A stretch of DNA of 64,000 bases from IMG/VR virus record IMGVR_UViG_3300037882_003354, positions 258,513 to 322,512 of that record; one strand, 5' to 3'. Below the pieces are notes generated by a model. That model was not told the DNA's origin. It was given only the letters and a program-made list of their open reading frames with translations, and did not search any database. The position numbers and the translations under genes are program-made. Below are positions 3,838 through 44,861 of this stretch, one piece after another. How positions within the stretch are numbered: the first letter of the stretch is position 1; the number at the start of each line of letters is the position of its first letter.

Positions 3838-4089
3838 ATGCGTATCAAAGAATTACTTGCCGAAAAAACCATTGCAGCACCCACTGCCAGTCAGTGTCAG
3901 GTCAAACGGCTGAGTAATGTTCGTTATTCTCAATGTGTGGCACGTGGGCTCAAAGCTCATGACAGTGAGCACACTGATGGCACTGGTACACAAGGTGTTA
4001 AAGGCAGTGGCCGGCATCTTCGTGGACGCAAAGTCAAGAGCACCAAGTACGGTGGTAGTTTAAAATACTATCCGGGCAGTCGGGAATAA
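3838..4089 (+). CDS. small basic protein with putative capsid-targeting N-terminus
   Basis: MRIKELLAEK start; lone plus-strand gene behind a TAAATA box. Confidence 0.65.
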   Translation: MRIKELLAEKTIAAPTASQCQVKRLSNVRYSQCVARGLKAHDSEHTDGTGTQGVKGSGRHLRGRKVKSTKYGGSLKYYPGSRE

Positions 4090-4092
4090 GAT

Positions 4093-4332
4093 TCAAAAAT
4101 CGCTCGACTGTTGTGCCGATTGAGCAGCCCGCTGCTCCCTGCGTGCCTTGCGCTCGTGGTATTCTTGAGCACGTTGAAAATCCCGATATGCATCGGACTT
4201 GTACATGTCCTTGGGTTCAAATGGCAGTAGATTGAACCTGCAGTGATCCAGCCAATTTTCCAGATCATCAAAGATCTTGGAAACTTCAGGCTTCATCTTG
4301 AGGGTCTTCTGAATGTAGTGTGGCAGTGCCAT
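4093..4332 (-). CDS. hypothetical protein
   Basis: MALPHYIQKTLKMKPEV...; AAGG upstream of ATG 4332. Confidence 0.7.
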   Translation of the reverse strand: MALPHYIQKTLKMKPEVSKIFDDLENWLDHCRFNLLPFEPKDMYKSDAYRDFQRAQEYHERKARREQRAAQSAQQSSDF

Positions 4333-4348
4333 GATTTTATTACCTTGA

Positions 4349-4813
4349 TTAAATTGTGATAGATTGAATTGGGCGAGAAGTGTTATATCTAACGATGCAT
4401 CCGTTCTCACCATCCTCGGACACCTCGATTTCTACCTCACGACGTGGATAGCGTGTGGCAATTTGCTCATAAAGATCGTCTGCGATCATCTCGCAACTTT
4501 TATGATCCAATGACAATACTGCTTGGGAGTTTGAGTACAAATCTTCCAGCCAGCGTTTAAATTGAATAAATTCAATTTCCCGGTCATCATGAAATACTTC
4601 AATAGCCACCCGGAAGTGAAAAATATGTCGATGCGGGGTTGCCAGGAATGACACATCATATCGGTCACCAGTGGCCAGTGCAGGATCTGTGGCAGCCGCT
4701 GGGTAGCAATGGATGCCTTCCTTGGCAAAAGTCACCCAAATTTTACGATTTGCCGAATTTCGAATTCGATTTCGTTGTTCTTGTAGCGCCAGGTTATGTT
4801 GTTCTTCAATCAT
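4349..4813 (-). CDS. QueD paralog (T-fold), DpdL-like
   Basis: FLATPHRHIFHF = LxxxHRHxF instead of QueD CxxxHGH; SCEMIA and EVSEDGENG T-fold motifs. Confidence 0.75.
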   Translation of the reverse strand: MIEEQHNLALQEQRNRIRNSANRKIWVTFAKEGIHCYPAAATDPALATGDRYDVSFLATPHRHIFHFRVAIEVFHDDREIEFIQFKRWLEDLYSNSQAVLSLDHKSCEMIADDLYEQIATRYPRREVEIEVSEDGENGCIVRYNTSRPIQSITI

Positions 4814-4840
4814 ATGTTAAACGTAGGTTAGTAAGTAATT

Positions 4841-4869
4841 AGTATACAGGAAAACAGGTGATCAGTCAA
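4841..4869 (-). promoter_or_regulatory. sigma70-type promoter
   Basis: TTGACT-17bp-TATACT upstream of the QueD-like gene. Confidence 0.75.
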
Positions 4870-4890
4870 GTTACTCCTGATCACCATGGT

Positions 4891-6528
4891 TCATTCGTCC
4901 AGGCTGTCTTCAAGACCCCTGAGTTTGTCGTCATCACGATTGGCAAAATCAATCTCATCTTGCGAAGTGTGTTCGAAATCAAACAAGTTGTTGAATGTGG
5001 TTGGCACTGGGCCAGTGGACCATGAACCGGCCAGATCGCACAAGAACGAATCTGCTTGTTCAATCATGTCAAATGCTTCCTGCTTGGTCTTGGTTTCAAA
5101 AAGTTCTGCAACAAACCGATTGAAATACAAAATATTACGTGGAACCCACACGCTGTATTCGTCCATGTTGGACTCTTTGGCGTTCAACTTCCTCCAATGA
5201 CGCCAATCGGGCAATTCGCGAGCGCATTCCATGTCCATGAGATGGTTTGCACGTTGTATTGCGGCAATATGTGAATAGACATTGTGTCCCATCATGAGTG
5301 CATATGCAAAACTATCCCAGGAAGTTCTGTTGGGAATCTTGTCCAGCTTGTTAAGCCGAGGGACAACCTTATAATGTTTTTTATTCAAGTGATCAAACTT
5401 TACCTGATTGTCCTGGTCATCTTTGCCCAGTTCCTTGTCTGTCTTGCGTACACCCAGGTCGTAATAACAGATGTCGCCCATGGTCAACCGTCGACCGATT
5501 TCGCTTTCGAATGGGAATGGAATGTCGCTTCCTGCAAGTGCCTTGTTGTCAGGGGCTTTTTCCATAATAACACTCCAACGCTTTGCTGTATGTTGCGAGT
5601 TGGTGTAGACGAGTCCATATGCCGTGGCGACAAATGGGGATGCGCAGTCAAAAGAGATGGTAACGTCTTCATTAATGTGTTTCCTGATTTGTCGTTGAAT
5701 AGCAGTTAAGTAGCAGGCCCAATCCATCTGGGCAGTGCCCAGGAAGTGGATCCAGTTTTTGCCCTTGAGCAAACCATCTTCTCTCAGGGTCATCAAACGC
5801 TTGAGTGTGATGTCCATGTCACTCTTGGTACCGCTGCCAAATGCCCAGCCGTCAGCAGCACGATCACCCCATACCGCAGGATCACTATACTCCTTGACTC
5901 CGTTGTACCATTTTTCAGTCAGTTCCCAATCATCACCCTGCAAGACATTGAGTAACTTGGTCTTGCCCAGGCGGTTCTTGAGGAAATACTCGTTGTTGAA
6001 TCTGGTCTTTTCCAGACAGTCTTCAAACGTCTTCAATCCAGTCTTGGGACCGTGAGTTTCATCGCAAGCCCAGGTGGGAACGTCCAACATCATGGACCAA
6101 TCTGCAGTTTCTTCCAACCAATACAAGATGTCATCTCGCATTTTATTGGCAGCCGCACCTTCAAAGTCTCTGAAGTCAAATTTAAGCACACCCTTGCCGA
6201 TCTGGAATCCACCGGAGTCACCCAGGATCAGCGTGTTGTTGCGATCTCGTTGTTGCACCATGGACTCCTGTGTGTAACTCTTCTTGAGATCCAGTTGTGC
6301 GTGACCTGCCGAATACAGACCGTATTTGTAGGAAAAATATCCTTGTTCAGGATTCAGGAAGTTTAGTCCTTCAACTCCGCGATCAAAGCCGGCTGGCATG
6401 CGTGATGCAGGAACAAAATCTTCCAGGCGTTGTTTTGCTATGTAAGTTCCATAGAAGCCACTGATGGCCGGCAGGAAAATAGCGTAGTCTTTTTGCGACT
6501 CTGTTAGATTGATTGGTGGATTACTCAT
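4891..6528 (-). CDS. dpdA: TGT-fold DNA 7-deazaguanine transglycosylase, DpdA-like
   Basis: LGDSGGFQIG, MMLDVP, VLQG, WIHFLG, ISFDCASP; flanked by que-type genes and the replisome. Confidence 0.75.
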   Translation of the reverse strand: MSNPPINLTESQKDYAIFLPAISGFYGTYIAKQRLEDFVPASRMPAGFDRGVEGLNFLNPEQGYFSYKYGLYSAGHAQLDLKKSYTQESMVQQRDRNNTLILGDSGGFQIGKGVLKFDFRDFEGAAANKMRDDILYWLEETADWSMMLDVPTWACDETHGPKTGLKTFEDCLEKTRFNNEYFLKNRLGKTKLLNVLQGDDWELTEKWYNGVKEYSDPAVWGDRAADGWAFGSGTKSDMDITLKRLMTLREDGLLKGKNWIHFLGTAQMDWACYLTAIQRQIRKHINEDVTISFDCASPFVATAYGLVYTNSQHTAKRWSVIMEKAPDNKALAGSDIPFPFESEIGRRLTMGDICYYDLGVRKTDKELGKDDQDNQVKFDHLNKKHYKVVPRLNKLDKIPNRTSWDSFAYALMMGHNVYSHIAAIQRANHLMDMECARELPDWRHWRKLNAKESNMDEYSVWVPRNILYFNRFVAELFETKTKQEAFDMIEQADSFLCDLAGSWSTGPVPTTFNNLFDFEHTSQDEIDFANRDDDKLRGLEDSLDE

Positions 6529-10076: not shown

Positions 10077-10367
10077 TTAATTAATCAGCATCCTGACTAA
10101 CCCAACACTGTCAATTGTGACTAACAGCATATAGTTTAACAGCATGCCAAAACTTTGTCTAGTATATGCGGCCCAGGCATACATACTACATCCTATGATC
10201 CAGATGGGATACAGCATGAGCAAGGGCGGTGTGGGCACAGTGATGGCCATGATGATAGCACATCCGATACTCATGGCCCAGGCCGCCAGTTCTACCCAAA
10301 ACCGATAGGGATGTGATCGTCGGTCCAATGCGATCCAGGTCAGAGTGCCCTGGAAAATTTTAATCAT
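10077..10367 (-). CDS. small membrane protein
   Basis: three hydrophobic segments; ATG 10367 overlaps the upstream stop. Confidence 0.7.
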   Translation of the reverse strand: MIKIFQGTLTWIALDRRSHPYRFWVELAAWAMSIGCAIIMAITVPTPPLLMLYPIWIIGCSMYAWAAYTRQSFGMLLNYMLLVTIDSVGLVRMLIN

Positions 10368-10632
10368 CTTTACGGCGATTAGCGTGACCGGAAATATCCA
10401 CGATGGTCTCCAGATCATCAAATTCACGGAACACTTGGTCCCATTGATCCTTCTGTGCAATGCGAATTGCCTTGCGAATCACACTGGGTTTAACATCCAG
10501 TTCTTCTGCCACGGCCATGATGGTTTCTTTCAAACCCTCTGTGAGATCAGCGATCTCCTGCATGACTGTGATGCCCTCGGCAACGATTTGCTTGATTTTG
10601 GCCTGTTCCGGAGCACCGAATGATTTTCCCAT
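10360..10632 (-). CDS. dsDNA-binding protein, T4 DsbA/GapR-like (probable)
   Basis: 90-aa helical protein with LKETIMAVAEELDVKPSVIRKAI pattern; own sigma70 promoter and AGGAG RBS. Confidence 0.55.
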   Translation of the reverse strand: MGKSFGAPEQAKIKQIVAEGITVMQEIADLTEGLKETIMAVAEELDVKPSVIRKAIRIAQKDQWDQVFREFDDLETIVDISGHANRRKDD

Positions 10633-10685: not shown

Positions 10686-10898
10686 TTATTCAATAGTTTT
10701 GCCAGCCTTTTTCACCCAATCGTCTGGAATTCGATTATGTTTTTCCACAAAAAGGTCATGCAATTTTTTAGGAGTGATGTTATATTTTTTAGCGATGGAT
10801 TTCATCATGTGATCAATGGCATCATATCCCAGCGGATTTTTTAAATCTTTTTCCAGATCCTTGACAGCATCTTCTCTGATCAAATCTAAAATTTTCAT
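10686..10898 (-). CDS. small putative internal head protein
   Basis: MKILDLIRE N-terminus. Confidence 0.6.
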   Translation of the reverse strand: MKILDLIREDAVKDLEKDLKNPLGYDAIDHMMKSIAKKYNITPKKLHDLFVEKHNRIPDDWVKKAGKTIE

Positions 10899-13054
10899 TT
10901 CTTCTTGCTGGGATTCTTGGCAGCATAACTAGCAGCCACTGCCATTTGACGACGCTTTTCCTTGGTCTTGCCACGGAATTGTGGAGCATTGGATTTTTCA
11001 AAGTCTTTGATGTATACATCCACTGGCGCATTTGCTGGAATCTTCTCTGCCAGAACATTTTCTAGAGTGGCTTGCAACCTTTGGGCATACGCATCACTAG
11101 ATTCGTTGGGCACACAATTGTTCACTCGGATGCCGCCCTTGATCTTGGTGCCCTCTTTGTGCTTGCCCTTCCAGCACTTGGCATCAAGTCGTTGTTTGAT
11201 TTCCATCATGTTGTTGCCATGTGTTTCACACATGCCACAATCTGGACATGTCATTTCCATCATCAGGTCTTCATTGTGTTTTTTCTTACCAGCACAATGT
11301 GCCTTTTGACTGAAGCCCTTGGGATGACTGCAATTGATGCTGCCCTTGTACTTTTGACTCCAGGCTTCATTATAGTTGTCGTGTTTGTCACGAATGGCAT
11401 CCAACTTCTTTTCACTGGCACCATCACGCCCTGCCTTGGCCAATGATTGCATGCCTTTTTTACCATACTTCTCATAGCCTTTGGCAGCACGACTCATTGT
11501 ACGCTCGCCTTCTGCCACATCTTCTTCCTTGGCAGTCTTTGCTGCGTCTTTCCAGGCCTGGTCCGTGGGTGCTTTGGGGTTGGATGCAGATCTACTGGTG
11601 CCTGCCTGCTTGCGCTTGTTCACATAGTAGTAAAGACCTTTCTTCTCAGCCTCCGCTACACCTTGCTCGCCGATCTTGTCACCAGGAACATTACCTTTCA
11701 TTCGTATGACACTTTTAGCACTGTGACCGGCGGCAATGCGTCGGGCGTCGGCATCATCTTTGGCAACAAACTTCTTTACTTGACCATTACGCAGCATCAT
11801 TTCGTATTTTTGTGTTGATCCTTCTTCCACACCTTCGTCCTTGGCCCGTCCTGACTTCATGTTAGCCAACCAATGCGCCATGCGTTGCTTCTCACCAGAA
11901 CTATGCCGGGCTGTGTCGCGCAATGAGCTGACACTGGCCCCGGTGTTGACTCCCGAACGTTTGGCCAGGCCCTTACGACCAGGGTTTTTGCCATCTTTGA
12001 AGTTTTCCGCCATGCCTGTGTCATGTTGCTCACCACTGATGCTTTGCAACACAGAATTTAGATAATCAGCGGCCTTGGTGATCTTGCTCTGTTGCCAGGC
12101 TTGCAATCCCTCACGTTCGCTGTACCGGCGCACCAGGTCCAACAAATTCACGGCATTTTTGGCAATGCTCTGCAACTCACTGCTGGCCATCTGAATCTCG
12201 TGATCTTCCGACACACCTTCTTTTGGTTCAGGTAAGTCAGGTAAGCCTAATTTTTTAAGAAGTTCAGGATTTACTTTTTTTAGTTTTTGTAGTTGCGACT
12301 GTATTTCTTTTTTACGCTGGGCTATTGCTTCTGGGCTATAGGCGCGCTGTTCTCTACGATCACCGCTGGGAGTACGATTATCCATTTCGGTAACATCTTT
12401 ACTTGCGGTCTTTTCGGACAATTTCTTGCCAATTTGTTCCGACCTGATCATTTTGATCAAACCGAGTTGTTCTCTGGCAATTTTATGTTCAGGATTCTTT
12501 TCCAGAGCACGATTCCAGAACTGTATTAAATCAGCCAATTCTTTGTCGCTCTTGCTTCTTAAATTTTGCTCTTGGTTGAAGGGGCTGGAATTAGAGCCCT
12601 CCGCCACATCTTTCTGGCCACGCAGGTCTTTCAACCGGGCCTTCAACTGGTTTAACTCGCCAGCATTACTGTCTGTTCCGGACAGTTTGCGGTCATACAT
12701 TATTTGACGGATGCGAGTCTCAATTTGTTTTTCGGTGGTGTACTCATCTGCACTTTCAGCAAAAGGTTTTTTGTGTTTTTCGTTGCCCTGCTTCTGTGCT
12801 CGCTTTTTGTCCACGTGAGCGCCAGCACCTCCTGTGGTGGCATTCTTGGCTACAAAGTTTCTGGGCTTGCTAGTAGGAACCACTTCTTTTTTATCTGCTT
12901 CTTGTGCAATCAGATTGTCACCACGTTTGCGAACACCACCCATGGGGCTACTCACACTGGCAATACTTCCTGAACTGGTACCGCCGCCGGTTGCACTTTC
13001 CAGTGTATACACAGTTTCCGTTTTGTTTTGTTTTTTGCTGAATTCGGTTGTCAT
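10895..13054 (-). CDS. modular basic protein with repeated (V/L/M)xE sites; putative protease-processed internal head polyprotein
   Basis: DVAEG x2, GVAEA, GVEEG, GVSED, GMAEN, FAES, VLAEK separate short K/R-rich modules. Confidence 0.6.
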   Translation of the reverse strand: MTTEFSKKQNKTETVYTLESATGGGTSSGSIASVSSPMGGVRKRGDNLIAQEADKKEVVPTSKPRNFVAKNATTGGAGAHVDKKRAQKQGNEKHKKPFAESADEYTTEKQIETRIRQIMYDRKLSGTDSNAGELNQLKARLKDLRGQKDVAEGSNSSPFNQEQNLRSKSDKELADLIQFWNRALEKNPEHKIAREQLGLIKMIRSEQIGKKLSEKTASKDVTEMDNRTPSGDRREQRAYSPEAIAQRKKEIQSQLQKLKKVNPELLKKLGLPDLPEPKEGVSEDHEIQMASSELQSIAKNAVNLLDLVRRYSEREGLQAWQQSKITKAADYLNSVLQSISGEQHDTGMAENFKDGKNPGRKGLAKRSGVNTGASVSSLRDTARHSSGEKQRMAHWLANMKSGRAKDEGVEEGSTQKYEMMLRNGQVKKFVAKDDADARRIAAGHSAKSVIRMKGNVPGDKIGEQGVAEAEKKGLYYYVNKRKQAGTSRSASNPKAPTDQAWKDAAKTAKEEDVAEGERTMSRAAKGYEKYGKKGMQSLAKAGRDGASEKKLDAIRDKHDNYNEAWSQKYKGSINCSHPKGFSQKAHCAGKKKHNEDLMMEMTCPDCGMCETHGNNMMEIKQRLDAKCWKGKHKEGTKIKGGIRVNNCVPNESSDAYAQRLQATLENVLAEKIPANAPVDVYIKDFEKSNAPQFRGKTKEKRRQMAVAASYAAKNPSKKK

Positions 13055-13423: not shown

Positions 13424-13861
13424 TTATACTTTTGAACTGGCTTTTAGGAACCAGGCATGCTTTTTATGTGAGTCCATGCGTTCTGCAAGAAAATTTGAAA
13501 GTCCATGTGCACCAGCAACCTCAGCAGCATCATAATTTTTCTTTAATACTATCTGTATACGCTCGCTGTCTTGCAACAGTTCTTGGATCATGTCTTCCTT
13601 GCTGGGCACGCGATCTTCATCTTCAATGCGGGTCAACATGCTGAGATTGTGGTAACTGGTGGGCATGTAACCCCCCAGTTTACGTACATTTTCTGCATAG
13701 GGGTCAATGGCACCGTAAACTTCAGTGTAGATTTCTTCAAACAATTTATGGTATTCGTAAAAGTCTGACCCCTCTATGTTCCAGTGCATGGAATGCACCT
13801 TGACATAAAAACTAAAAGTGGTGGCAAAACCTATACGAGTCAGTTGAATTAATTTATCCAT
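13424..13861 (-). CDS. dps: Dps / ferritin-like DNA protection protein
   Basis: HWNIEGSDFYEYHKLFEEIY...IDPYAE...HKKHAWFL. Confidence 0.9.
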   Translation of the reverse strand: MDKLIQLTRIGFATTFSFYVKVHSMHWNIEGSDFYEYHKLFEEIYTEVYGAIDPYAENVRKLGGYMPTSYHNLSMLTRIEDEDRVPSKEDMIQELLQDSERIQIVLKKNYDAAEVAGAHGLSNFLAERMDSHKKHAWFLKASSKV

Positions 13862-13862: not shown

Positions 13863-14171
13863 TTATTCCCCCACCGGCTTCTCGCCGGTCATGTATTGTC
13901 TGGCAAACCATAATCGAAACCATTCGGGAGTGCCAGGGCGAATGTCATTCTGCCGCATGATCTCTGCCTTCTCTGTTCCGGTTACACTGATATTACTACC
14001 TTTATTTATTTCTTCTTGGTGGCGTCGGTATTCTGCCAGCCGGGCTTGACCACCCAGCCCTGCCAGATACTGTACAATTTTTAACTCGTGTATGGGATCC
14101 GCTGGGTCAAGATGGCAGTCATCAGGGTCATCCCTGGGGATATTATCAGTGCTTATTCGGTACTGCTTCAT
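13863..14171 (-). CDS. hypothetical protein
   Basis: ORF in operon, IRPGTPEWFRLWF motif. Confidence 0.7.
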   Translation of the reverse strand: MKQYRISTDNIPRDDPDDCHLDPADPIHELKIVQYLAGLGGQARLAEYRRHQEEINKGSNISVTGTEKAEIMRQNDIRPGTPEWFRLWFARQYMTGEKPVGE

Positions 14172-16063
14172 TTGACTGCACGTTCTATCAATCGCAGCAT
14201 GGCCTGGGCCATGGCCATCTCATATTCTTCACCCAGCGGAACCTGACGGCTTTCTGCGACCGGCGCTGGTGCAGCAGGCGCCGCTGGTGCAGGTTCATCA
14301 GTCAGTCCCATGCCTTCTCTGGTGGCTTGATACAAGGTCTTGCCAGCCACTTGGATCTTGGCTCCAACTCCAGTTGCTTGTTGGAATCCTGACTCATTGC
14401 CCTCAGCGGCATATTTACGAGCCAAGGATCCACTGATTCCAGTGACATTGGTAGTATCAGCATCTCTTTCACCGCTGCTGACAAAACTCAGGTGCACATA
14501 TTCTCTGGCACCTGCGGGGTCAGTCGAACGGACTGGTCCGCTGTTCCAGCCGTTGAGTAATTTCTCAATGCTGCCAGCACCCTTGCCCAGACGATCACTG
14601 CCGCCAATGAATGTCATGTTGCGGAATCCCTTGGCATACAACCAATTGGCTGCATAGATGGGACCCAGTACATAGTCAGTGACGATGTGCTTGGCAAACT
14701 CAGGATAAATTTGTTTGATGAACGCAGCCTTGGTGGCGGGATCCAGAGGATCGTCCTTGGTGCCACTGCTGTTGCTCAGGAATATGAAACTGTTGGCGCC
14801 GCCGGTCTCCACGGTCTTTGCCATGACCAACTGATGTCCCAGGGTGGGTGGATTCATGCGGCCGAAACAGAACGCAGCCATGGGGCCCTGTTTTTTAGCA
14901 GCAACTTCTTCATCAGGCACTCGGTGCTTGGCAAAGTTGGCACGACTGAATCCCAGACGATCAATCAACTTGAGTTTGTCCTTGCCACCACCGAAAACAT
15001 AACCTTCGTGTGCGTTAACACCATCTGTGATGGCAATGATTTCACTGCCCTGTTGCTGGGAGTCAATCTGTTGCTTGATGTGTGTCTTGAGTTCAGTCAC
15101 TGCTGCCCACATGGTCCAGATGCCCAACAGTCCAGGACCACCACCATCTTCTTGATACAACCAACCGTCCCGGTTGGTGCCCAGCATTTTTTGTGCAGCA
15201 CCTTCGCTCAGTCGGCCACGAACAAACTCCAGGAATCTGGGCACGATTTCGTTGCTGATGTCATTCTCTTCCAGCATGCTGGTGATAAACGGACCCATGG
15301 CTGTGATCACACTCTTGCCCTTCATGGCAGTCAGCTCATCAATAAATTTGTCCACAGCCGGCCCATTGGCAGCAATGATGTTTTGAGTCTCTTTGATCAA
15401 GTTGGGATTAATTTTAACTATTGGCTTATCACGCATTTCACCAACCATGAAAGTGACACCTTGTTTTTCTTTGAGACCCTTCAATCCCACCAGTGGTGTG
15501 TCTCCCTGACCCAGACCAGGAATATAAGTGTGCACAGCAATACCGCCCACGCTGGCACCAATGGTTTCACCAAGTTCGCCCTCAATCTTCACACGATATT
15601 CCACGGTGTTGGGCTTGAATACAAAATATCCATTGTCAGTGGGTGGCGTACCAGTCCACATGAGATCGCCCATGTAGAAGAAATCGGTGCCCTGTGGTAC
15701 AATTCGCTCCAGGGCAGGGCGCAAGATACTCTCCTTCTCCCAGAGATCATTACGGTTGGCGCCACGACCTTCGTCATATGCCCTGATGGTCATGAATTCC
15801 ATCTTGCCCTTGGCCACCTTGTCGTACATGTGTTTGTCTGCAAACACCAGTTGACCCTGATCATCTCGTCCAAACACCACGGCGGGAAATCCATCCCACT
15901 TGACAGTCACTGTCTTGGGGTCTTTTTGCAAGGAAATCAGTTCCTGCACCACTCGCTGTGCGCCCTTGCTGCCACTTGTGATGATGAGATCTTCAGGGTG
16001 GTCAATGCCTTCACGCAACACCGGCGCTGTACTTGAACGGTTGAACAGTTCTCTTAGTATCAT
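14168..16063 (-). CDS. RNA-ligase-like covalent nucleotidyltransferase domain fused to a HIGH-superfamily (cytidylyl/adenylyltransferase-like) domain
   Basis: N-terminal KWDG, MGDL, HEGYV, KLIDR; C-terminal FGRMNPPTLGH, GSDR, ISGSLAR. Confidence 0.65.
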   Translation of the reverse strand: MILRELFNRSSTAPVLREGIDHPEDLIITSGSKGAQRVVQELISLQKDPKTVTVKWDGFPAVVFGRDDQGQLVFADKHMYDKVAKGKMEFMTIRAYDEGRGANRNDLWEKESILRPALERIVPQGTDFFYMGDLMWTGTPPTDNGYFVFKPNTVEYRVKIEGELGETIGASVGGIAVHTYIPGLGQGDTPLVGLKGLKEKQGVTFMVGEMRDKPIVKINPNLIKETQNIIAANGPAVDKFIDELTAMKGKSVITAMGPFITSMLEENDISNEIVPRFLEFVRGRLSEGAAQKMLGTNRDGWLYQEDGGGPGLLGIWTMWAAVTELKTHIKQQIDSQQQGSEIIAITDGVNAHEGYVFGGGKDKLKLIDRLGFSRANFAKHRVPDEEVAAKKQGPMAAFCFGRMNPPTLGHQLVMAKTVETGGANSFIFLSNSSGTKDDPLDPATKAAFIKQIYPEFAKHIVTDYVLGPIYAANWLYAKGFRNMTFIGGSDRLGKGAGSIEKLLNGWNSGPVRSTDPAGAREYVHLSFVSSGERDADTTNVTGISGSLARKYAAEGNESGFQQATGVGAKIQVAGKTLYQATREGMGLTDEPAPAAPAAPAPVAESRQVPLGEEYEMAMAQAMLRLIERAVK

Positions 16064-17088
16064 GATGCAAATAATCCTTTAACCATTTCCAATCCACTCA
16101 GGATCTTTTTCTTGTCTTCTTCTGCCCGTGCCATGGCCTGTGGGGTCTCTGCCTTGTCACGTTTTTTGCCCTGAACATCTATCATGGCCTTCTCTTCATA
16201 ACGACGGACAAACTGAGACAAGAAGTCATCTGCTGATGTAAAATTGGCCAGGTTGCCCTGACCAAACATGTTGTTGATTTCAAAACTACGTGCCAATCCT
16301 TTGACACCGTTGACCAGTATGGAAATCTTGATGTTGTTGATGTCTGATCCTGTGTTTTGTTTTAACAATGGATCTACCTTGACTCGGCCGAGGTCACCAC
16401 CTGCCTGCTGTACTTCGTATTTGAAGATGTCCAACAGCCAGGTGTTGGGATTGGTGGTGACTGTGACGGTCTGAGTGTCTTTTTGCTTGGAGAACGACAC
16501 ACGCTGGTCGTCCACAACTTTTAACTGTACTCCAGCATGTTGTATGCTCATGTCCAAGAGTTCACCAGTCACGCTGTACATGTTGCCAGCCAGTAATCCC
16601 TTTTGTCCACGCTCGGGTGTCACACGAGTGGCTCCCCAGTCTCTCATCTTTTCCTCGTGCCACATGAAATCAATCTGTACAAAGTCCTTGGCACCGATCT
16701 TGAATATGGGATGCCCGGGCTTGCTTTCGGCTGTGTCCACATAGGGCACATGCCCTGCTTTGACAAACTCGTCTGCTAGTTTATTCCAATGGGTAGTGAA
16801 CTGACCGTAACTGGTGCCCTCCACTGGCGGGGCGATCATTTGCAGATCAATGTCTCCGTATATTTTATCTGGATTCTCTGCGGCATCTTGCTCGTGGTAG
16901 GCGCTGCTGCCTGTGGGACGACCGCGTTCTACGGGGCCTAAACCTTTTTGTTCTAGGAATCGGTTAAAGTCTGTAACGAAGTTGTCAACCACCTTGAGGG
17001 CATGACCCACCACAGCGGGATGCAACACAGTTCCTTGTGTGATCTTGGTGTCCCATCCACCTTCTCTGAGTAATTCAAAGATTTTCAT
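16060..17088 (-). CDS. Pol-beta-superfamily nucleotidyltransferase (putative)
   Basis: TGSSAY...YGDIDL and third Asp in VQIDF; MKIFELLREGG N-terminus. Confidence 0.6.
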   Translation of the reverse strand: MKIFELLREGGWDTKITQGTVLHPAVVGHALKVVDNFVTDFNRFLEQKGLGPVERGRPTGSSAYHEQDAAENPDKIYGDIDLQMIAPPVEGTSYGQFTTHWNKLADEFVKAGHVPYVDTAESKPGHPIFKIGAKDFVQIDFMWHEEKMRDWGATRVTPERGQKGLLAGNMYSVTGELLDMSIQHAGVQLKVVDDQRVSFSKQKDTQTVTVTTNPNTWLLDIFKYEVQQAGGDLGRVKVDPLLKQNTGSDINNIKISILVNGVKGLARSFEINNMFGQGNLANFTSADDFLSQFVRRYEEKAMIDVQGKKRDKAETPQAMARAEEDKKKILSGLEMVKGLFAS

Positions 17089-18848: not shown

Positions 18849-19244
18849 TTAGTGATTGTACAGTATGGACTCTACTGACCCAGCGTCGATGGCAACATAC
18901 CCACGCACCCAGACAAAGTTACCGGTGAAATTAAAGTAATCCACTGTGCTGGTGTTTCTAAAATTACCGAATGTATAGTTCACGGTGGTGTTGGTCACTG
19001 TGAACCAGTCAGATTCCACAGGGCTAGTGGCCAGGCTGGCCTGCATGGTCACAGTGCCAAAGAATTCAGGGCTGGCGGTGTACATGACTGTGTGCAGTCC
19101 ATCGCTGCTGCCGTAATACCCATCGCCCTGTACTGGCAGACTGGTATACACCAGGGTGGATGTTGCAGAATTGGGGTATACAACAGCCACACTGCTGGTG
19201 CTGTTGTATATTGAGAATGTTAATCCTTGGCTTAGGGCTGGCAT
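18849..19244 (-). CDS. beta-rich putative virion structural protein
   Basis: S/T/V/Y-rich, FTGNFVWVR; TATAAATA at 19267-19274 upstream. Confidence 0.6.
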   Translation of the reverse strand: MPALSQGLTFSIYNSTSSVAVVYPNSATSTLVYTSLPVQGDGYYGSSDGLHTVMYTASPEFFGTVTMQASLATSPVESDWFTVTNTTVNYTFGNFRNTSTVDYFNFTGNFVWVRGYVAIDAGSVESILYNH

Positions 19245-19936
19245 GACATTTCCTGTTCTAGTTCAGTATTTATACTATCTCGCGTTATAAACTTGGTCAC
19301 AGACTGCACAGCATCTCCCATGAACATGCCCACCATGGTCAACAATTGACTGTCTTCCACGTACAAGAAGGGTGTTTGAACCCATCCACGATTGCCGCGA
19401 AACCACTCGGTGTTATTTTTAGAAACGTTGAATCGGTCTCCATAATTGCGAGACCAATCGTAAAACTTCTGTCTGAGTTCTCTTGTTGTGGTGTGTTTAA
19501 AAATCACCTTGTACATATACCGACCGTGTGGCAAGTCATCGCACAGCACGGCCTTGTGTCCATTCTCCAGGATAAAATCCAATTCAGTGTCAGTGTCGGG
19601 AGAATGAATCTCGGTAATCCACGGATTCAATGCTGTGGTAATCTGATTTAGCAAACCCACATCACCGCAAAATATATTAAAATGACGCCCCTCCACACGA
19701 GATTTTACATCAGTTCTGTTCAAAAACGGCTGTATTGCATGGAAGAATGTCCGTAGTTCTTGAGGATTGGCATTGATATGATTCTTACCGTAGGTGGCCC
19801 ATGATCCACCCATCATCAACCGTGATTGAGAGGTGTTACTGGCCCGCATGAGCTGGCTGGCGCCGTTGATCACGCAGCACACCTTGTAGGGCCATTTTTT
19901 GTAAAACAGCCGATTAGTTTTCAACTGGCGTGGCAT
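19232..19936 (-). CDS. hypothetical protein
   Basis: ORF between clpA and the structural gene; likely ATG 19936. Confidence 0.7.
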   Translation of the reverse strand: MPRQLKTNRLFYKKWPYKVCCVINGASQLMRASNTSQSRLMMGGSWATYGKNHINANPQELRTFFHAIQPFLNRTDVKSRVEGRHFNIFCGDVGLLNQITTALNPWITEIHSPDTDTELDFILENGHKAVLCDDLPHGRYMYKVIFKHTTTRELRQKFYDWSRNYGDRFNVSKNNTEWFRGNRGWVQTPFLYVEDSQLLTMVGMFMGDAVQSVTKFITRDSINTELEQEMSCQP

Positions 19937-22181
19937 CACTTTTAACCTTGACAACTGGTAAAATGTCTACAATATTGAGTTTTAACTTATCGGCTTCTAC
20001 CGACACCTCAACCATCCCGCCGTTGACCAGACGTCCGAACAGGATCTCCTTGCTCAATGGTTTCTTGATCATGTCATCAATGACACGCTGTAGCGGACGA
20101 GCTCCCATCTTGGGATCAAATCCGCGGCTGATCAGGTATTCCACGGCTGCGGCGTTGGGTTTGATATGAATGTTCTTTTCTTTGACCAGGGTGTTGAGAT
20201 CATCAACAAACTTCTTGACGATCTTGGCCATGGTCACATGATCCAGCTTGCCGAATCTAATGACACCATCCAGTCGATTGCGGAACTCTGGTGCAAAGAA
20301 CTTGTTGACAGCATCCTTGGGATCACTATCTCGTTCCAGGCTACCAAATCCCACACCGTTTTTGTCGGCATCAGCAGCACCCAGGTTGCTGGTCATGATG
20401 ATGATAGCGTTGCGCCCATCGGCCCGCTTGCCATTGCTGCCCGTGATGAATCCGTTGTCCATCAACTGCAACATGATATTCAGCACATCAGGGTGGGCCT
20501 TTTCCACTTCGTCCAGCAGCAGAATACAATTGGGATTTTCCTGGAGATTGGTGATCAGTTGTCCAGCATTGTCATCGAAACCCACGTAGCCCGGTGGGCT
20601 GCCGATAAACTTGGCCACTGAGTGCTTCTCTTGAAACTCACTCATATCAAATCGGATCAACTTGGTGTTCAGATTGGAGGCCAATTGTTTGGCTGCCTCA
20701 GTCTTGCCCACACCGGTGGGTCCCACGAACAGGAAACTGCCCACGGGTTTATTGGGAGACTTCAATCCAGCCTGTGCAATAAAGATTTTATCCAGCAACA
20801 CTTCGATAGCTTTTTCCTGTCCGAACACCTTGGACTTCATGTTTTTCTCCAGGCCAGTTAGGTTGACGCTCTCTTTGTTTGAGATCTGATCCACCGTCAA
20901 GTTGGCAATTTTGCTCACCTCGAACAAAATTTCATCGTGATCCACAATACCACCCACCTCGTCACGTACTTTGAACCTGGCACAAGCGCAGTCGATTAGA
21001 TCGATGGCCTTGTCGGGCAATTTTTTATCTGCCATGTATTTCACGCTGTACTTGACAGCATCAGCAATGGCCTGACTGGTGATTTTGACACCGTGGTGCT
21101 TTTCATAATACTTCTTGAGACCCTTGAGGATTTTGATGGCAGTGGCTTCATCAGGCTCGTCGATGGTCACACGCTGGAACCGGCGCATGAGCGCACGATC
21201 CTTTTCAAAGTACTTGCGATACTCTTCCCAGGTGGTGCTGGCAATGACCTTGATGCCGCCCTTGCCCAGTGCAGACTTCAACATGTTGGCCATGTCGTTA
21301 CTGCCACCATTGGATGCACCTGCACCATTCATCATGTGCGCTTCATCGATGAACACAATACAGTTGCCCTTCTTTTCCACGGCATTGATCACTGACTTGA
21401 GTCTTTCCTCAAAATCACCACGGTACTTGCTGCCTGCCAGCATGGCTGAGATGTCCAGACTGTAAACTGTGTGATCCTTGATAAAGTTGGGCACATTGCC
21501 TTCATGAATTTTACGAGCAATGCCTTCTGCGATGGCTGTCTTGCCCACGCCTGGATCACCAATCAAGATGGCATTGGCCTTGGTACGCCGTGCCAACACC
21601 AGTTCGATTTCTTCAATCTCTCGATCGCGGCCAATCACAGGGTCAATCTTCTTGGCCTTGGCACGGGCACTAAGGTCTGTGCAAAATTGTGCCAACATTT
21701 TATCTGAATGCACTGATCCCCTGGTGGGGGCAACCTCATCCTCATCTTTAATTGATGTCTTACTGATGAACTCTACAAAACGATCTTTTTCAATGTTTGC
21801 TTTTTTTACAAAGAAGTTGGCATGGCTGGACTTTTCGGAGAACATGCTGATGAAGCAATCCATGGGTTCAACAGTGCGCCGGCCACTGAACAACACTTGT
21901 GTGAATGCTCGATTCAACATTCGATCCACAGTGGATGTTTTTCTAGGTTTCACGTTACCGTTGGTCACAATGTTCTGTAAATCAACAGCGATGTAAGACT
22001 CCAGGTCTCGTTTTAGGTCGTCTACATTTGCACCAAATGTGCCCAGAGTTTCTGCAAAGGTAGTGTTGCCCAGCATGCAGTATAAAAAATGTTCAAGGGT
22101 AATGTATTCGTGATTATTATCACTGGCTAAAATTACAGCATCTTCAAAAATCTGTTCTAACTCTTTATTGGGTTCCAACAT
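19914..22181 (-). CDS. clpA: ClpA-type AAA+ ATPase (Hsp100)
   Basis: HEYITLEH N-domain, two Walker A motifs (GDPGVGKT, GPTGVGKT), FDMSEF, VGFG loop, MGARPL. Confidence 0.93.
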   Translation of the reverse strand: MLEPNKELEQIFEDAVILASDNNHEYITLEHFLYCMLGNTTFAETLGTFGANVDDLKRDLESYIAVDLQNIVTNGNVKPRKTSTVDRMLNRAFTQVLFSGRRTVEPMDCFISMFSEKSSHANFFVKKANIEKDRFVEFISKTSIKDEDEVAPTRGSVHSDKMLAQFCTDLSARAKAKKIDPVIGRDREIEEIELVLARRTKANAILIGDPGVGKTAIAEGIARKIHEGNVPNFIKDHTVYSLDISAMLAGSKYRGDFEERLKSVINAVEKKGNCIVFIDEAHMMNGAGASNGGSNDMANMLKSALGKGGIKVIASTTWEEYRKYFEKDRALMRRFQRVTIDEPDEATAIKILKGLKKYYEKHHGVKITSQAIADAVKYSVKYMADKKLPDKAIDLIDCACARFKVRDEVGGIVDHDEILFEVSKIANLTVDQISNKESVNLTGLEKNMKSKVFGQEKAIEVLLDKIFIAQAGLKSPNKPVGSFLFVGPTGVGKTEAAKQLASNLNTKLIRFDMSEFQEKHSVAKFIGSPPGYVGFDDNAGQLITNLQENPNCILLLDEVEKAHPDVLNIMLQLMDNGFITGSNGKRADGRNAIIIMTSNLGAADADKNGVGFGSLERDSDPKDAVNKFFAPEFRNRLDGVIRFGKLDHVTMAKIVKKFVDDLNTLVKEKNIHIKPNAAAVEYLISRGFDPKMGARPLQRVIDDMIKKPLSKEILFGRLVNGGMVEVSVEADKLKLNIVDILPVVKVKSDATPVEN

Positions 22182-33677: not shown

Positions 33678-36600
33678 TCAGGAGAACTTTTTCTTAAACT
33701 CTTCAAATTCTTTGCTGAGTTCCTTGATGGCCTCCACCAACAAAGGCACCACCTTCTCGTACTGAATGGTCCGGTAGTTCTCACCTGACTTGCTGTCACC
33801 GTTTTCATCACTATCAAACGGAGCCAACTTGACTGCCTCCGGCAATACAGCTTCCAATTCGTCGGCAAATAATCCAACTATGGATTCATCAGTGGAGAAC
33901 CCCAGCTGTTCAGCCAATTGATTGGGAGTGTACCGGATGCCAGTCAGGGCCCTGACCTTGGTCACAGCATCAGTAATCACACAAACATTGGTTTTCAATC
34001 TACGATCTGAAAAGAATGCTGTGATGTCACCCGTAGTTGTCAAAGCACCACTAAATTCATGACATTTTGCAACATACGGAATAGTACCTTCATCGATTGT
34101 GGCTGCGTTAGTTCCGACAAATCCAATGTAGCCCTGTCTTACTCCACCGCTGTGCGGGAAAAATTCAACATATCCAGACTTTGCACTAGTGCCAGTGCGT
34201 AGAGTTAAGAATCCGTTAGTTGTGCCAACCTGCGTGGTCAGCAATGTGGCATTTAGTGTGCCAGCAGTGCCAGACGCAGCAGCACCAATTCCCACGCTGG
34301 TAAATTGCAGGCTGCTGGTGCTGTTGATGCACAATATGCCAGTGCTGTCCACCCGGATGCGCTCTGCAGTACCAGCGCCAATCAACACAGTGCTTGACAA
34401 TCCATTCGAACCAATTAATGCACCAATGACAGTGTTATTGATACCAGTGGTTATTGCACAACCAGCACAGTATCCAATGCCAATATTGCGGGATCCGATG
34501 GTATTACTCACGAGCGCATTCCATCCAACGGCAGTGTTGTCAACCCCACTGGTGTTGGCGTTCAAGGCACAGGCACCTATTGCTGTGTTTGTAATACCAG
34601 TGATGTTGCACTGGAGTGCATAACTACCCACTGCGGTGTTTAAGCCACCATTTGTGTTTCTAAAGAGCGTATCGTTGCCAACGGCTGTGTTGCATCCGCC
34701 ACCGGTATTCTGCACAAGCGCACCAACTCCCAGGCCTGTATTGTAGCAGCCGACAATGTTGCATTTGAGTGTACCATACCCAATGGCCACGTTATTAACA
34801 CCGCCAGAGTTGCAGTAGAGTGCACCGACACCTTGTGCGGTGTTTCCACAGCCGTTAATGTTGAAGTATAGTGCACAAGCGCCAATAGCTGTATTGTTGT
34901 TGCCATATCCAGAGGGGCCAGGGCTGTTGTTGGAGAAAAGCGCATTATGACCCACGGCAGTGTTGTAGCTGTTTTCTATGGCGTTTGATAGCGCACCAGT
35001 GCCCACAGCCAAGTTGCCCCAGCCGGTGGTGTTGGCAGCCATGGCAAGGGCACCTATGGCCACATTGCCGTCGGTAGTGTTTTGCCTAAGCGCAAAACAA
35101 CCTATTGCGATATTACTGCAACCGATAATATTGTTAGAAAGTGCATTATATCCCACTGCAAAGTTGTTGTTGCCAATAGTATTTTTACCCAGTGAACTGG
35201 TGCCCTGTGCAAAGTTATTGCAACCAGTGGTGTTGTTGACCAGTGCATGGCATCCAGCTGCAAAATTATAGCAACCAGTCTGTGTCTTGTTACCGGCACA
35301 GCAACCTATGCCCACGTTGCCCAGTCCAGTGGTGTAGCCGAACACTGATCCCAGGCTGGTGGGAGTGGCCAGGGTGCTGGCGGCACTACTACCCACATAT
35401 CCTGCCGCTGACGAACCAGTGTAACCTGTACTTCCGATGTATCCAGGATCACCCCTGGAGCCCACCCATCCCACCGATCCAGTGTATCCCTGACTGCCCA
35501 CATAGCCACTACTGCCGGTGTAACCAATGCTGCCAGTGTATCCACGACTGCCAGTATATCCATTACTGCCGTTATAACCAACGTCACCCCGACTGCCGGT
35601 GTAACCCAGAACTCCCGATCCCGCATATCCAGTGGACGCTGATCCGGTGTAGCCAATGAGGCCACGACTGCCTGTGTATCCCAGCACACCCGATCCCACA
35701 TATCCCGTGGCAGCTGAGCCGGTGTAACCCACGCTGCCCTGGTATCCCACTCCTATGGAACCAGTGTATCCCAGTACAGCCGATCCCACATATCCAGCAC
35801 CGGCGGAGCCAGTATAACCCAGGCTACCACTATATCCAAATCCTGTGGAACCAGTGTAACCCAGACTGCCGGTGTATCCCTGTGTTCCTGAACCAGTGTA
35901 GCCAATGCCCTGCGAACCAGCATAACCCGCGCTGCCGCTGTATCCTATGCCCGACGAACCAGCATAACCGCGACTGCCAATGTAGCCAATGCTGCCAGTG
36001 TAACCAATTGATCCAGTGAAGCCAACACCCTGTGAACCAGCGTATCCTGAACTGCCAGTGTAACCTTGAGCGCCCGATCCTGTGTAGCCAACACCTTGTG
36101 AACCAGTGTAACCCTGGCTACCAGTGTAACCTTGGGCGCCCGATCCTGTGTACCCAAGCAGACCGCGACTGCCCACGTAGCCCACGCTGCCGGTGTAGCC
36201 CAGCACACTGGAACCGGAATATCCAATGCCCTGTGAACCGGTATATCCTGAACTGCCAGTGTAACCCTGTGGGCCCTGTACATTGCTTGCCGAGCCGGTG
36301 TATCCTATGCTGCCCACGTACCCTCGGCTGCCCGAGTAACCAGATGGTCCCACAATTTTACCAACATCAGAAAATCCTGACACATTACCCGGAGCAGTGG
36401 CATTGGAGTAGACCCATAAATTACCCGAATTCGCAGCAATATATCCATCGCCAATATTGATGGGACCAACGATGCTGGCGAACTGGCTGGTGGTGGCTTC
36501 AGTCACACTGCCCTTGATGTTGAGGCCAGAGCCCAGGGAACCAGTGTACCCAAAATCACCTCTAGAGCCACGACTGCCCACATATCCCGTGTCTCCCAGA

Positions 36601-43763: not shown

Positions 43764-43836
43764 TCTCCAGTAGCTCAGCGGTAGTAGCATTTGACTGTTA
43801 ATCAAAGGGTCCGTGGTTCGATCCCACGCTGGAGAG
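43764..43836 (+). tRNA. tRNA-Asn(GTT), CCA not encoded
   Basis: TCTCCAG/CTGGAGA acceptor, TTTGA-CTGTTAA-TCAAA, TTCGATC T-loop. Confidence 0.92.
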
Positions 43837-43854
43837 CATAACACATTAATTCAT

Positions 43855-43930
43855 GGGCTGTGATTGAGCTGGGGTTCTTGGCTGCTTTGCAAGCAGTTAT
43901 CGGTGGGTTCGATTCCCACACGGTCCACCA
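43855..43930 (+). tRNA. tRNA-Ala(TGC)
   Basis: loop TTTGCAA, G3:U70 pair, CCA end. Confidence 0.85.
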
Positions 43931-43940
43931 AAATGATAAA

Positions 43941-44028
43941 GGAAGATTGGCAGAGTGGCCGATTGCGTCAGTCTTGAAAACTGAAGACCCCAACGGGTCC
44001 GTGAGTTCGAATCTCACATCTTCCTCCA
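43941..44028 (+). tRNA. tRNA-Ser(TGA)
   Basis: TCAGT-CTTGAAA-ACTGA, long variable arm, CCA. Confidence 0.93.
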
Positions 44029-44030
44029 AG

Positions 44031-44059
44031 TTGACATGAGCAGCGACCGGCTGTACAAT
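44031..44059 (+). promoter_or_regulatory. sigma70-type promoter
   Basis: TTGACA-17bp-TACAAT before tRNA-Lys. Confidence 0.75.
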
Positions 44060-44067
44060 CAGATCAT

Positions 44068-44143
44068 GGGACGATAGCTCAGTTGGTAGAGCAGTAGACT
44101 TTTAATTTATTGGCCGTGGGATCGTGCCCCACTCGTCCCACCA
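44068..44143 (+). tRNA. tRNA-Lys(TTT)
   Basis: GGGACGA/TCGTCCC, loop CTTTTAA, atypical T-loop ATCGTGC, CCA. Confidence 0.88.
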
Positions 44144-44254
44144 TATTAAAACACATTCAACGGCAACCGGGATACCTAGCAACTGGACGCAGGGGCTATC
44201 CAAATAGTAGGGCACTACAGCCGAAAGCTAGGACTAGAGTGTGTTTCCATATGG
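44141..44254 (+). ncRNA. unknown structured RNA 1
   Basis: closing helix CCATAT..AAACACATT / AGTGTGTTT..ATATGG, inner CCTAGC/GCTAGG helix and several small hairpins; no ORF. Confidence 0.6.
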
Positions 44255-44498: not shown

Positions 44499-44541
44499 TG
44501 GCAAGATACACGTTATAAATACACGTGAAGAACAATGAACT

Positions 44542-44629: not shown

Positions 44630-44639
44630 AATTTATCCT

Positions 44640-44715: not shown

Positions 44716-44721
44716 ACACAT

Positions 44722-44855: not shown

Positions 44856-44861
44856 TTATTC

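Follow-up and report, generated by a model that had tools for sequence, protein, structure and literature searches.

A putative shuffled cassette polyprotein of head-internal proteins in a T4-like jumbo phage

A 719-residue gene of a 322-kb T4-like jumbo phage was found to consist of a string of about a dozen small protein cassettes, joined by linkers that resemble cutting sites of the phage's own head protease. Relatives of the protein swap, lose and reorder these cassettes exactly at the linkers, and the gene is therefore probably a shuffled precursor of proteins packed into the capsid and injected with the DNA, a reading to which a probability of roughly 0.6 is given. Cleavage, packaging and effector roles are inferred from sequence and from analogy with T4.

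Results

Architecture of the open reading frame

The window analysed is a 64,000-nt stretch of the metagenome-derived virus record IMGVR_UViG_3300037882_003354. The features of the open reading frame, whose product is referred to as P0001, are collected in Table 1. A preliminary description made from the sequence alone had proposed a polyprotein of short basic modules separated by xAE/xxE sites, and its observation was confirmed: the frame exists at the positions given there, although on the minus strand, and all of the motifs it named, among them CPDCGMC, are present. Three of its details required correction. Not all of the modules are basic, as cassette D has a pI of 5.0, cassette B 6.2 and residues 652-670 4.4. 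In the long proteins the three Cys motifs mostly travel together as one 88-aa block, although they are separable in small stand-alone proteins, and two strong module boundaries, at Glu563 and Glu651, are Y-N-E and P-N-E rather than xAE.

Table 1. Features of the cassette gene and its two neighbours (window coordinates; all on the minus strand)
Position	Feature	Residues	Description
10895..13054 (-)	Whole ORF (P0001)	719 aa plus stop	79.7 kDa, pI 9.6; proposed cassette polyprotein precursor
12998..13054 (-)	N-terminal leader	1-19	Family-specific (MxxEFK...YxLE|S); proposed propeptide or targeting sequence; in 101 of 120 long family members
12755..12997 (-)	Cassette A	20-100	Gly/Ser-rich stretch, then a basic DUF7230-like motif (aa 63-98); ends F-A-E100; always the first cassette (109 of 119 homologs)
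12599..12754 (-)	Cassette B	101-152	Ends V-A-E152; rare (5 of 119 homologs)
12206..12598 (-)	Cassette C	153-283	Splits into C1 (aa 153-214, ending L-S-E) and C2 (aa 215-283, ending V-S-E); AT-richer segment; rare; C2 absent from relatives P0003 and P0007
12005..12205 (-)	Cassette D	284-350	Conserved acidic unit, taken for helical in the preliminary description; WQQSK(I/V)TKAADYL in most members; ends M-A-E350; in 107 of 119 homologs, before or after the Cys block
11822..12004 (-)	Cassette E	351-411	Basic; ends V-E-E411; also in small stand-alone proteins
11651..11821 (-)	Cassette F	412-468	Ends Q-G-V-A-E468
11510..11650 (-)	Cassette G	469-515	Ends D-V-A-E515; weak match to phrog_22379
11366..11509 (-)	Cassette H1	516-563	Modelled as a helical hairpin (pLDDT about 75); ends Y-N-E563
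11102..11365 (-)	Cys/His block H2-H4	564-651	WSxKYK..C..PKGFSQKAHC; CPDCGMC..H; CW.G...NC; about 30 invariant columns; possible internal sites M-M-E600 and M-M-E618; ends P-N-E651; H2 alone equals Synechococcus phage Bellamy gp122
10898..11101 (-)	C-terminal cassette I	652-719	Contains L-A-E670; modelled as helical (pLDDT about 80); always last (80 of 119 homologs); homologous to part of the 1006-aa syntenic protein of Prochlorococcus phage P-TIM68
13051..13419 (-)	Upstream neighbour	122 aa	Overlaps the ORF by 4 nt; N-terminus MRSKEFIVE|K, of the T4 capsid-targeting-sequence type
10686..10898 (-)	Downstream neighbour	70 aa	N-terminus MKILDLIRE|D, of the same leader type

Linker sites and cassette boundaries

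Eight linker sites were defined, ending at Glu100, 152, 283, 350, 411, 468, 515 and 670. Sites of the form hydrophobic-Ala-Glu occur 6 times in P0001 against 1.03 expected from shuffled sequences (p about 6e-4), equal to 0.83 per 100 aa compared with a proteome mean of 0.127. Across 120 family members there are 542 such sites against 95.5 expected, a 5.7-fold enrichment with the consensus (E/K)-Q-G-V-A-E|G, although counts over related sequences are not independent. The syntenic protein of P-TIM68, however, has only one hydrophobic-A-E site.

Homology blocks were observed to end at these Glu residues. Of 376 internal alignment ends, 50% lie within 10 aa of the eight sites, which had been defined beforehand, against 21% at random, and the two remaining clusters of ends follow Glu563 and Glu651. 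Directly before the Cys cassette, P1 is Glu in 146 of 146 distinct sequence contexts and P3 is V/L/I/Y/M in 140 of 146, whatever lies upstream. The invariant Glu could nevertheless belong to the cassette itself rather than to a cleavage site, and P-N-E651 does not fit the motif. The segment at 12230-12600, which had been described as AT-richer as if swapped in, corresponds to cassette C; its GC content is 0.41 and its GC3 0.36, against 0.49 and 0.51 in the two flanking cassettes, and it is bounded by two linker sites.

Shuffling of cassettes among relatives

Collinearity of homologs over the full length had been named in advance as an outcome that would refute a shuffled array, and the homologs proved not to be collinear. 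Both orders A-D-H-I and A-H-D-I are common, and about 200 cassette types occur in 120 proteins. Single-linkage clustering of segments had collapsed into one cluster because unsplit segments bridge cassettes, and the clusters were redone with mutual-coverage limits. A MAFFT alignment of the full protein with 101 cassette fragments misaligned the fragments and was discarded. Close relatives differ by exact cassette insertions or deletions at the linkers, at both protein and DNA level. The DNA is 92-95% identical across flanks and shared cassettes, the insertions and deletions are flanked by linker repeats of roughly 15 nt (about CAAGGTGTGGCRGAR), and the alignments overlap by 16 nt at the linkers.

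Head protease, capsid protein and gene context

The genome encodes, at genome positions 203110-203739, a Peptidase_S77 protease (PF03420, 91.7 bits, above the cut-off) that is 34% identical to T4 gp21. It sits in a T4-like order of portal, protease, putative scaffold and capsid protein; the 363-aa scaffold is inferred from its position and its many sites (6 hydrophobic-A-E sites), as its match is to a PHROG of unknown function. In T4, gp21 cuts after Glu in L/I-X-E (PMC9026906). The capsid protein of this phage has L-A-E42|S ahead of the conserved RR..GVQPM block, where T4 gp23 has its maturation site L-T-E65|A.

The cassette gene itself lies 66 kb from the head genes, among replication and nucleotide-metabolism genes (cytidyltransferase, Dps-like, PolB). 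The T4 late-promoter motif TATAAATA occurs twice in the window, neither time near the gene and not above chance. It should be noted that the T4 ip genes also lie outside the head cluster.

Stand-alone cassettes and leader sequences

The same cassettes also occur as about 340 small stand-alone proteins. Of the 119 listed, 87 start with the 9-residue leader M-[KR]-x-x-E-[FI]-[ILV]-x-E, and in 82 the cassette begins 0-3 aa after that Glu. This leader resembles the capsid-targeting sequence of T4 IPII and IPIII, which start MKTYQEFIAE|A. The leader pattern hits 4 of 376 N-termini in this genome against 2 of 2072 internal Met, and three of the four hits lie within 6.4 kb around this ORF, including both flanking genes. 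In 62 kb of T4 it hits only ipII, ipIII and gene 61.1. The genomic context of two small stand-alone cassette genes was uninformative.

T4 IP propeptides are 10-19 aa long (PMC9026906) and end in hydrophobic-X-Glu. The leader of P0001 is 19 aa long and ends Y-T-L-E|S, with Thr rather than a hydrophobic residue at P3, while many homologs have Y-V-L-E, which fits. The stand-alone cassettes and both flanking genes fit the T4 pattern well.

Sequence and structure searches

Megablast of the gene against 50,697 phage records gave no match, and tblastn against phages hit only cyanophage hypothetical proteins. Pfam and PHROG scans of the whole protein, its parts and 10 extra cassettes of relatives gave nothing above cut-offs; P0001 returned only DUF7230 and two function-unknown PHROGs, with no sequence homology to T4 IPI, IPII or IPIII. 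The DUF7230 match reached 20.8 bits at aa 63-98, below the curated cut-off of 27 bits, and 26.7 bits in relative P0074. No literature was found for the three DUF names searched (DUF7230, DUF6321, DUF6267).

Structure models were of low confidence. AlphaFold2 of aa 511-719 gave a pLDDT of 57, and below 50 over most of the highly conserved WSxKYK/CPDCGMC part (aa 561-624). A Foldseek search of the PDB had no hit below E = 1, its defensin-like hairpin rows not being meaningful, and an ESM Atlas look-alike search for aa 561-655 gave only leads below 0.9, all viral hypothetical proteins. A Zn-binding or disulfide role for the Cys/His block was considered but could not be addressed with these models. 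A 202-aa cassette in the close relative P0003, which also occurs stand-alone with the leader, is predicted to adopt an ADP-ribosyltransferase-like fold (DarT and Tpt1, VIA Z 7.2-7.9; Foldseek E 0.08), although this weak match is below the level regarded as clear.

Discussion

The preliminary description had inferred a recombination-shuffled array from which the head protease releases many small effectors, and this interpretation is supported in part: the recombination-shuffled array is shown. The analysis establishes the cassette structure and linker enrichment, the non-collinearity of homologs, the exact cassette insertions and deletions with linker repeats in the DNA, the presence of a gp21-type protease gene and the existence of stand-alone cassettes with T4-like leaders. 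Release by the head protease is strongly suggested, but in the absence of proteomic, expression or biochemical data, targeting to the prohead, cleavage at the linkers, retention in the head, injection and any effector function are all inferences. The DNA-condensing and anti-defence roles proposed earlier remain guesses, the only functional hint being the weak ADP-ribosyltransferase-like match in a relative.

It is proposed that the ORF encodes a precursor of about 11-14 independent cassettes of 19-131 aa, mostly Lys-rich and basic, which would enter the prohead core like T4 internal proteins through its conserved N-terminal leader. The gp21-type protease would then cut it after Glu at the hydrophobic-x-Glu linkers (consensus Q-G-V-A-E|G), and the freed small proteins would stay with the packaged DNA and enter the host with it. 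In this view recombination between copies of the linker repeat inserts, deletes and reorders cassettes, and the locus is therefore hypervariable, as the T4 IP loci are. A more far-reaching and tentative possibility, judged less likely than not, is that the locus is a built-in diversity generator for injected proteins, in which a short linker serves at once as head-protease cut site and recombination repeat. T4-like jumbo phages could then draw on a shared pool of hundreds of small cassettes, some of them enzymes, and load ever-changing combinations into the capsid from a single gene.

Proteins injected with phage DNA act before any phage gene is expressed, and few are known outside T4, P1, N4 and the phiKZ group. 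If the main reading is right, this very large family, with more than 1500 long forms and about 340 short forms in metagenomes, is a ready catalogue of such proteins, whose mature ends can be predicted from sequence. It would also show a simple genetic design in which one short sequence gives both processing and cassette exchange, and it offers leader and linker sequences that could be tested for loading foreign proteins into capsids of non-model phages.

Two other explanations are unlikely but survive about equally well. The protein may be a prohead core or scaffold-like filler, targeted and cut as proposed, whose fragments are simply expelled before DNA packaging, as are most fragments of T4 gp22, gp67 and gp68 (PMC9026906), so that the cassettes would have no role after injection. 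Its site density is comparable to that of the putative scaffold, and much of it is modelled as non-globular (ESM Atlas pTM 0.18). However, a separate putative scaffold gene exists next to the protease, and P0001 has a pI of 9.6 and lies 66 kb from the head genes, whereas a gp22-like core protein would be an acidic coiled-coil protein encoded beside the protease and capsid genes. Fillers would not need about 30 invariant columns in the Cys block across divergent phages, stand-alone leader-bearing copies or an enzyme-like cassette, and most fragments are basic and would be expected to stay on DNA, as T4 IPs do.

Alternatively, the product may be an uncleaved, flexible multi-domain protein acting inside the infected cell, for instance on DNA or nucleotide metabolism, with the QGVAEG stretches serving only as flexible linkers and recombination sites. 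The conserved position between the cytidyltransferase/Dps-like genes and PolB in related phages, the fusion of one relative (P0112) to a cytidylyltransferase domain and the lack of a nearby late promoter motif favour this view. It does not explain why the residue before each cassette must be Glu with a hydrophobic P3 even when the upstream element is an unrelated 9-aa leader, why that leader resembles the T4 capsid-targeting sequence, or why the motif equals the specificity of the phage's own protease and its capsid maturation site. Processing by some other host or phage protease, with products acting in the cytoplasm or released at lysis, is very unlikely: only the cassette-plus-conserved-linker design itself speaks for it, no other protease is implicated, and the linker and leaders match gp21-type specificity and T4 targeting sequences. 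An assembly or gene-calling artefact, conceivable for a metagenome-derived record, can be all but dismissed given more than 1500 homologs of 400-1180 aa from many samples, conserved synteny, an intact frame and flanks 92-95% identical in independent contigs.

[quoted passage not shown] What differs here is that up to a dozen or more units are concatenated in one ORF with putative internal cut sites, and that the long form has its own 19-aa leader. T4 Alt is a head-packaged ADP-ribosyltransferase processed by gp21 at both ends, and the predicted ADP-ribosyltransferase-like cassette of P0003 is likewise bounded by hydrophobic-x-Glu sites on both sides; that cassette is absent from P0001, however, and its weak match is closest to DarT and Tpt1, not Alt, so that any activity is conjectural. 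Inner-body and ejection proteins of the jumbo phages phiKZ, 201phi2-1 and SPN3US are cut at several sites after Glu (S/A-X-E) by a diverged gp21 homolog (PMC9026906), but they are single proteins losing propeptides, without sequence relation to P0001, rather than arrays of exchangeable cassettes.

Polyvalent proteins of phages and conjugative elements (Iyer et al., 2017, PMC5512222) are also mosaic multi-module proteins with rapid domain shuffling, predicted to be packaged and delivered with the DNA. They carry large recognisable enzyme domains and often their own Zincin-like metallopeptidase, whereas no Pfam domain was found in P0001 or in the 10 extra cassettes of relatives, only one ADP-ribosyltransferase-like fold was seen, in a relative, the modules are tiny and the linkers match the head protease. 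Viral polyproteins, for example picornavirus-like ones, also yield many products from one ORF through a virus-encoded protease acting at short conserved sites, but with a fixed gene order and essential products, while in the present family content and order vary freely between close relatives.

The cassette array

The ORF placed by the preliminary description at 10895-13054 is real, although it lies on the minus strand, and its observation of a cassette protein with recurrent linkers was confirmed. It encodes a protein of 719 aa (hereafter P0001) of 79.7 kDa with a pI of 9.6. The virus record of 322,512 bp has direct terminal repeats, and the window is its last 64 kb. On the same strand lie a DUF6267 plus cytidyltransferase protein, a ferritin/Dps-like protein and a 122-aa ORF that overlaps the start of P0001 by 4 nt, with a 70-aa ORF, a 90-aa ORF and a family-B DNA polymerase downstream. 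The polymerase is closest to those of the jumbo phages Phosso (51%) and Atu_ph07 (45%).

Coordinates of the features discussed (window positions unless another sequence is named)
Position	Strand	Feature
10895-13054	-	ORF of P0001, 719 aa
12206-12598		Cassette C, aa 153-283
12597-12612		16-nt overlap of DNA alignments at a linker
11652-11667		16-nt overlap of DNA alignments at a linker
10360-10632	-	90-aa ORF
13424-13861	-	Ferritin/Dps-like protein
14168-16063	-	DUF6267 plus cytidyltransferase protein
16060-17088	-	342-aa protein with leader (L008, a related contig, 3961-4989)
19914-22181	-	ClpB/Clp-type double AAA+ ATPase
33678-39797	-	Protein with collagen triple-helix repeats
43764-48809	+	tRNA gene cluster
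Genome G000 (this virus) C1:157845-158837, outside the window	-	Acidic 330-aa protein
Genome G000 C1:210325-210942, outside the window	-	205-aa protein with leader
L012 (T4 NC_000866) 18966-19130	-	T4 gene 61.1
L007 5695-6129 and L010 7432-8736		DUF6321 (separate 144-aa gene; 434-aa neighbour of a small cassette gene)

Hydrophobic-Ala-Glu occurs six times in P0001, at residues 98-100, 150-152, 348-350, 466-468, 513-515 and 668-670, compared with 1.03 in shuffled sequences (p about 6e-4), a density 6.5 times the proteome mean of this phage. V-S-E283 and V-E-E411 are variants of the same linker. Among 120 family members, 542 such sites were found against 95.5 expected, although these sequences are related and the counts are therefore not independent; the consensus is (E/K)-Q-G-V-A-E followed by Gly. 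The AT-richer stretch noted in the preliminary description is cassette C, with a GC of 0.41 and a GC3 of 0.36 against 0.49 and 0.51 in the two flanking cassettes, and it is bounded on both sides by linker sites.

Relatives and cassette exchange

A word-based search found more than 1500 proteins of about 400-1180 aa, all of them from metagenomes and none with a functional name (one carries a source label from a fused cytidylyltransferase domain). Most cover only parts of the query. Three blocks (aa 1-100, 281-350 and 511-719) are widely shared and the rest is rare. Mapping the cassettes of P0001, lettered A to I from the N-terminus, onto 119 homologs gave 46 different architectures, with cassette A first in 109 homologs and cassette I last in 80, whereas the acidic cassette D stands before the Cys block in about 40 and after it in about 35. 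Collinearity of the homologs over their full length, which had been named beforehand as an outcome that would refute a shuffled array, was thus not observed.

Splitting all members at the sites and clustering them with mutual coverage gave about 200 cassette clusters, of which fifty are seen in three or more proteins, and many end in GVAE. Of 376 internal alignment ends, 50% fall within 10 aa of the eight sites defined beforehand, compared with 21% at random. The two largest remaining clusters follow Glu563 (Y-N-E) and Glu651 (P-N-E).

The closest relatives share 85-92% identity in common blocks and differ only by whole cassettes inserted or missing at x-x-Glu junctions. P0002 has five extra cassettes, P0003 has a 202-aa and a 138-aa cassette after B and lacks C2 (the second part of cassette C), and P0004 lacks G and H1 (the unit preceding the Cys block). 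At the DNA level, two independent contigs are 88-95% identical to the window across flanking genes and shared cassettes, and the alignments break at the linkers with 16-nt overlaps. The extra cassettes are flanked by near-identical copies of the linker codons (about CAAGGTGTGGCRGAR), and the Q-K-D-V-A-E linker of the window reads as a fusion of the two linker copies that flank the insert in the relatives. As inferred from these junction sequences, recombination between linker repeats is therefore a sufficient mechanism for gain, loss and reordering of cassettes.

Resemblance of the linkers to head-protease sites

Outside the window, the genome has a T4-like head module comprising a portal, an 80-aa and a 337-aa protein, a Peptidase_S77 protease (91.7 bits; 34% identical to T4 gp21), a 363-aa putative scaffold (its function is inferred from position, as its PHROG match has no known function) and a gp23-like capsid protein. 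T4 gp21 cuts after Glu in L/I-X-E (PMC9026906). T4 gp23 is cut at L-T-E65↓A, as translated here with the propeptide length taken from PMC9026906, and the capsid protein of this phage has L-A-E42↓S at the corresponding place, ahead of the conserved RR...GVQPM block. This correspondence was made by eye, since BLAST did not align the two N-termini.

Similar sites are carried by other proteins of the phage. The putative scaffold has six hydrophobic-A-E sites and the 337-aa protein has N-L-I-A-E↓E. An acidic 330-aa protein, encoded beside large uncharacterised genes, has four hydrophobic-A-E sites including E-D-Q-G-V-A-E↓G-S-S, the same linker as in the polyprotein. The 90-aa ORF downstream of P0001, which is conserved and also present in L008 and in the compared sequences L007, L014 and L015, has Q-I-V-A-E↓G at residues 15-20 and may be another protease substrate.

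Stand-alone cassettes and their leaders

The strongest comparative evidence came from a search with the Cys block alone among proteins of 52-166 aa, which gave 343 small viral proteins carrying the same cassettes (H2-H3 and H4 of the Cys block, E-like, G-like, DUF6321 and I-like), singly or in twos and threes and again in varying order. Of the 119 listed that start with Met, 87 begin with a 9-residue leader M-[KR]-x-x-E-[FI]-[ILV]-x-E, and in 82 of these the cassette starts 0-3 residues after that Glu. T4 IPII and IPIII begin MKTYQEFIAE↓A, the experimentally defined capsid-targeting sequence (CTS) (PMC9026906). Before the WSxKYK cassette, P1 is Glu in 146 of 146 distinct contexts and P3 is V/L/I/Y/M in 140, whether the upstream element is a leader or any of many unrelated cassettes. 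The cultured cyanophages Bellamy (gp122, 51 aa) and S-SM2 (SSM2_108) have this cassette behind a similar, CTS-like N-terminal leader, and in both the gene lies between the small and large terminase genes. DUF6321 appears to belong to the same cassette pool and occurs as a separate leader-bearing 144-aa gene near the polyprotein gene, as a cassette inside polyproteins (family member P0065) and in a 434-aa neighbour of a small cassette gene.

In this genome the leader pattern hits 4 of 376 N-termini against 2 of 2072 internal Met. Three of the four hits are the two genes flanking P0001 and a 342-aa gene 3 kb upstream. The latter has no Pfam hit, is conserved in a related contig and starts MKIFELLRE↓GG, the T4 CTS-type leader; it contains a GS...D-x-D stretch that looks like a nucleotidyltransferase motif, so it may be a capsid-packaged enzyme. 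The fourth is a 205-aa protein starting MRIHDLIIE↓N, about 1.2 kb beyond the tape-measure-like gene that adjoins the portal gene. In the 62 kb of T4 examined, the pattern hits only ipII, ipIII and gene 61.1, a hypothetical protein of 54 aa starting with the CTS-like leader MKTFKEFIKE↓D. The long family has its own conserved leader, MxxEFK...YxLE↓S, present in 101 of 120 members, and its length of 19 aa is within the 10-19-aa range of T4 IP propeptides.

Properties of the cassettes

The predicted products are 2-15 kDa and mostly of pI 9-10, with D, B and aa 652-670 being acidic. The Cys/His block has about 30 invariant columns, yet it models poorly (pLDDT below 50 for H2-H3), whereas H1, H4 and I give a helical hairpin, a beta-hairpin and helices, respectively, at pLDDT 70-80. 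No PDB match was found for these models, and no cassette examined has a Pfam identity.

A 202-aa cassette of the close relative P0003 has 18 homologs, many of them stand-alone behind the same kind of leader. Its model (pLDDT 57, pTM 0.54) matches ADP-ribosyltransferase (ART) folds and little else: the top seven Foldseek matches are DarT (E 0.08-0.23), and VIA Z is 7.2-7.9 for Tpt1 and DarT, followed mostly by other ART-fold proteins. These scores are below what is regarded as a clear match, so this predicted fold is only a lead, which parallels T4 Alt, a head-packaged ART trimmed by gp21.

Interpretation

The interpretation offered in the preliminary description, a recombination-shuffled array from which the head protease releases many small effectors, is partly supported. 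The cassette array and its shuffling at the linkers are demonstrated by the sequences, whereas cleavage at the linkers, an internal head location and any function of the products are inferred from sequence comparison alone. The linkers are plausibly head-protease sites and the products plausibly internal head proteins, and this is the best explanation with a probability of about 0.6. It rests on the agreement with gp21 specificity, the predicted site of the capsid protein, the invariant junction Glu, the T4-like leaders of stand-alone cassettes and the same leaders on both flanking genes. Against it stand the position of the gene among replication genes, the absence of a late promoter motif near it, the imperfect fit of two junctions and the lack, but for one, of hydrophobic-A-E sites in the syntenic protein of phage P-TIM68. 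No literature on this family or its DUFs was found. The nearest known concepts are the T4 IPs with their CTS, phiKZ-type multi-cut head proteins and polyvalent proteins (PMC5512222).

The surroundings of the gene are also conserved. The ferritin/Dps-like protein and the DUF6267 plus cytidyltransferase protein lie upstream in conserved synteny, one family member (P0112) is fused to a cytidylyltransferase domain, and P-TIM68 has a 1006-aa relative directly after its cytidyltransferase gene. Elsewhere in the window, the phage encodes a ClpB/Clp-type double AAA+ ATPase of 755 aa, also present in the related contig L008, and a 2039-aa protein with collagen triple-helix repeats and a C-terminal Peptidase_S74 (endosialidase chaperone) domain that is probably a fibre. 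A cluster of 10 tRNA genes (Asn, Ala, Ser x2, Lys, Leu x2, Cys, Thr and Gly) was also found.
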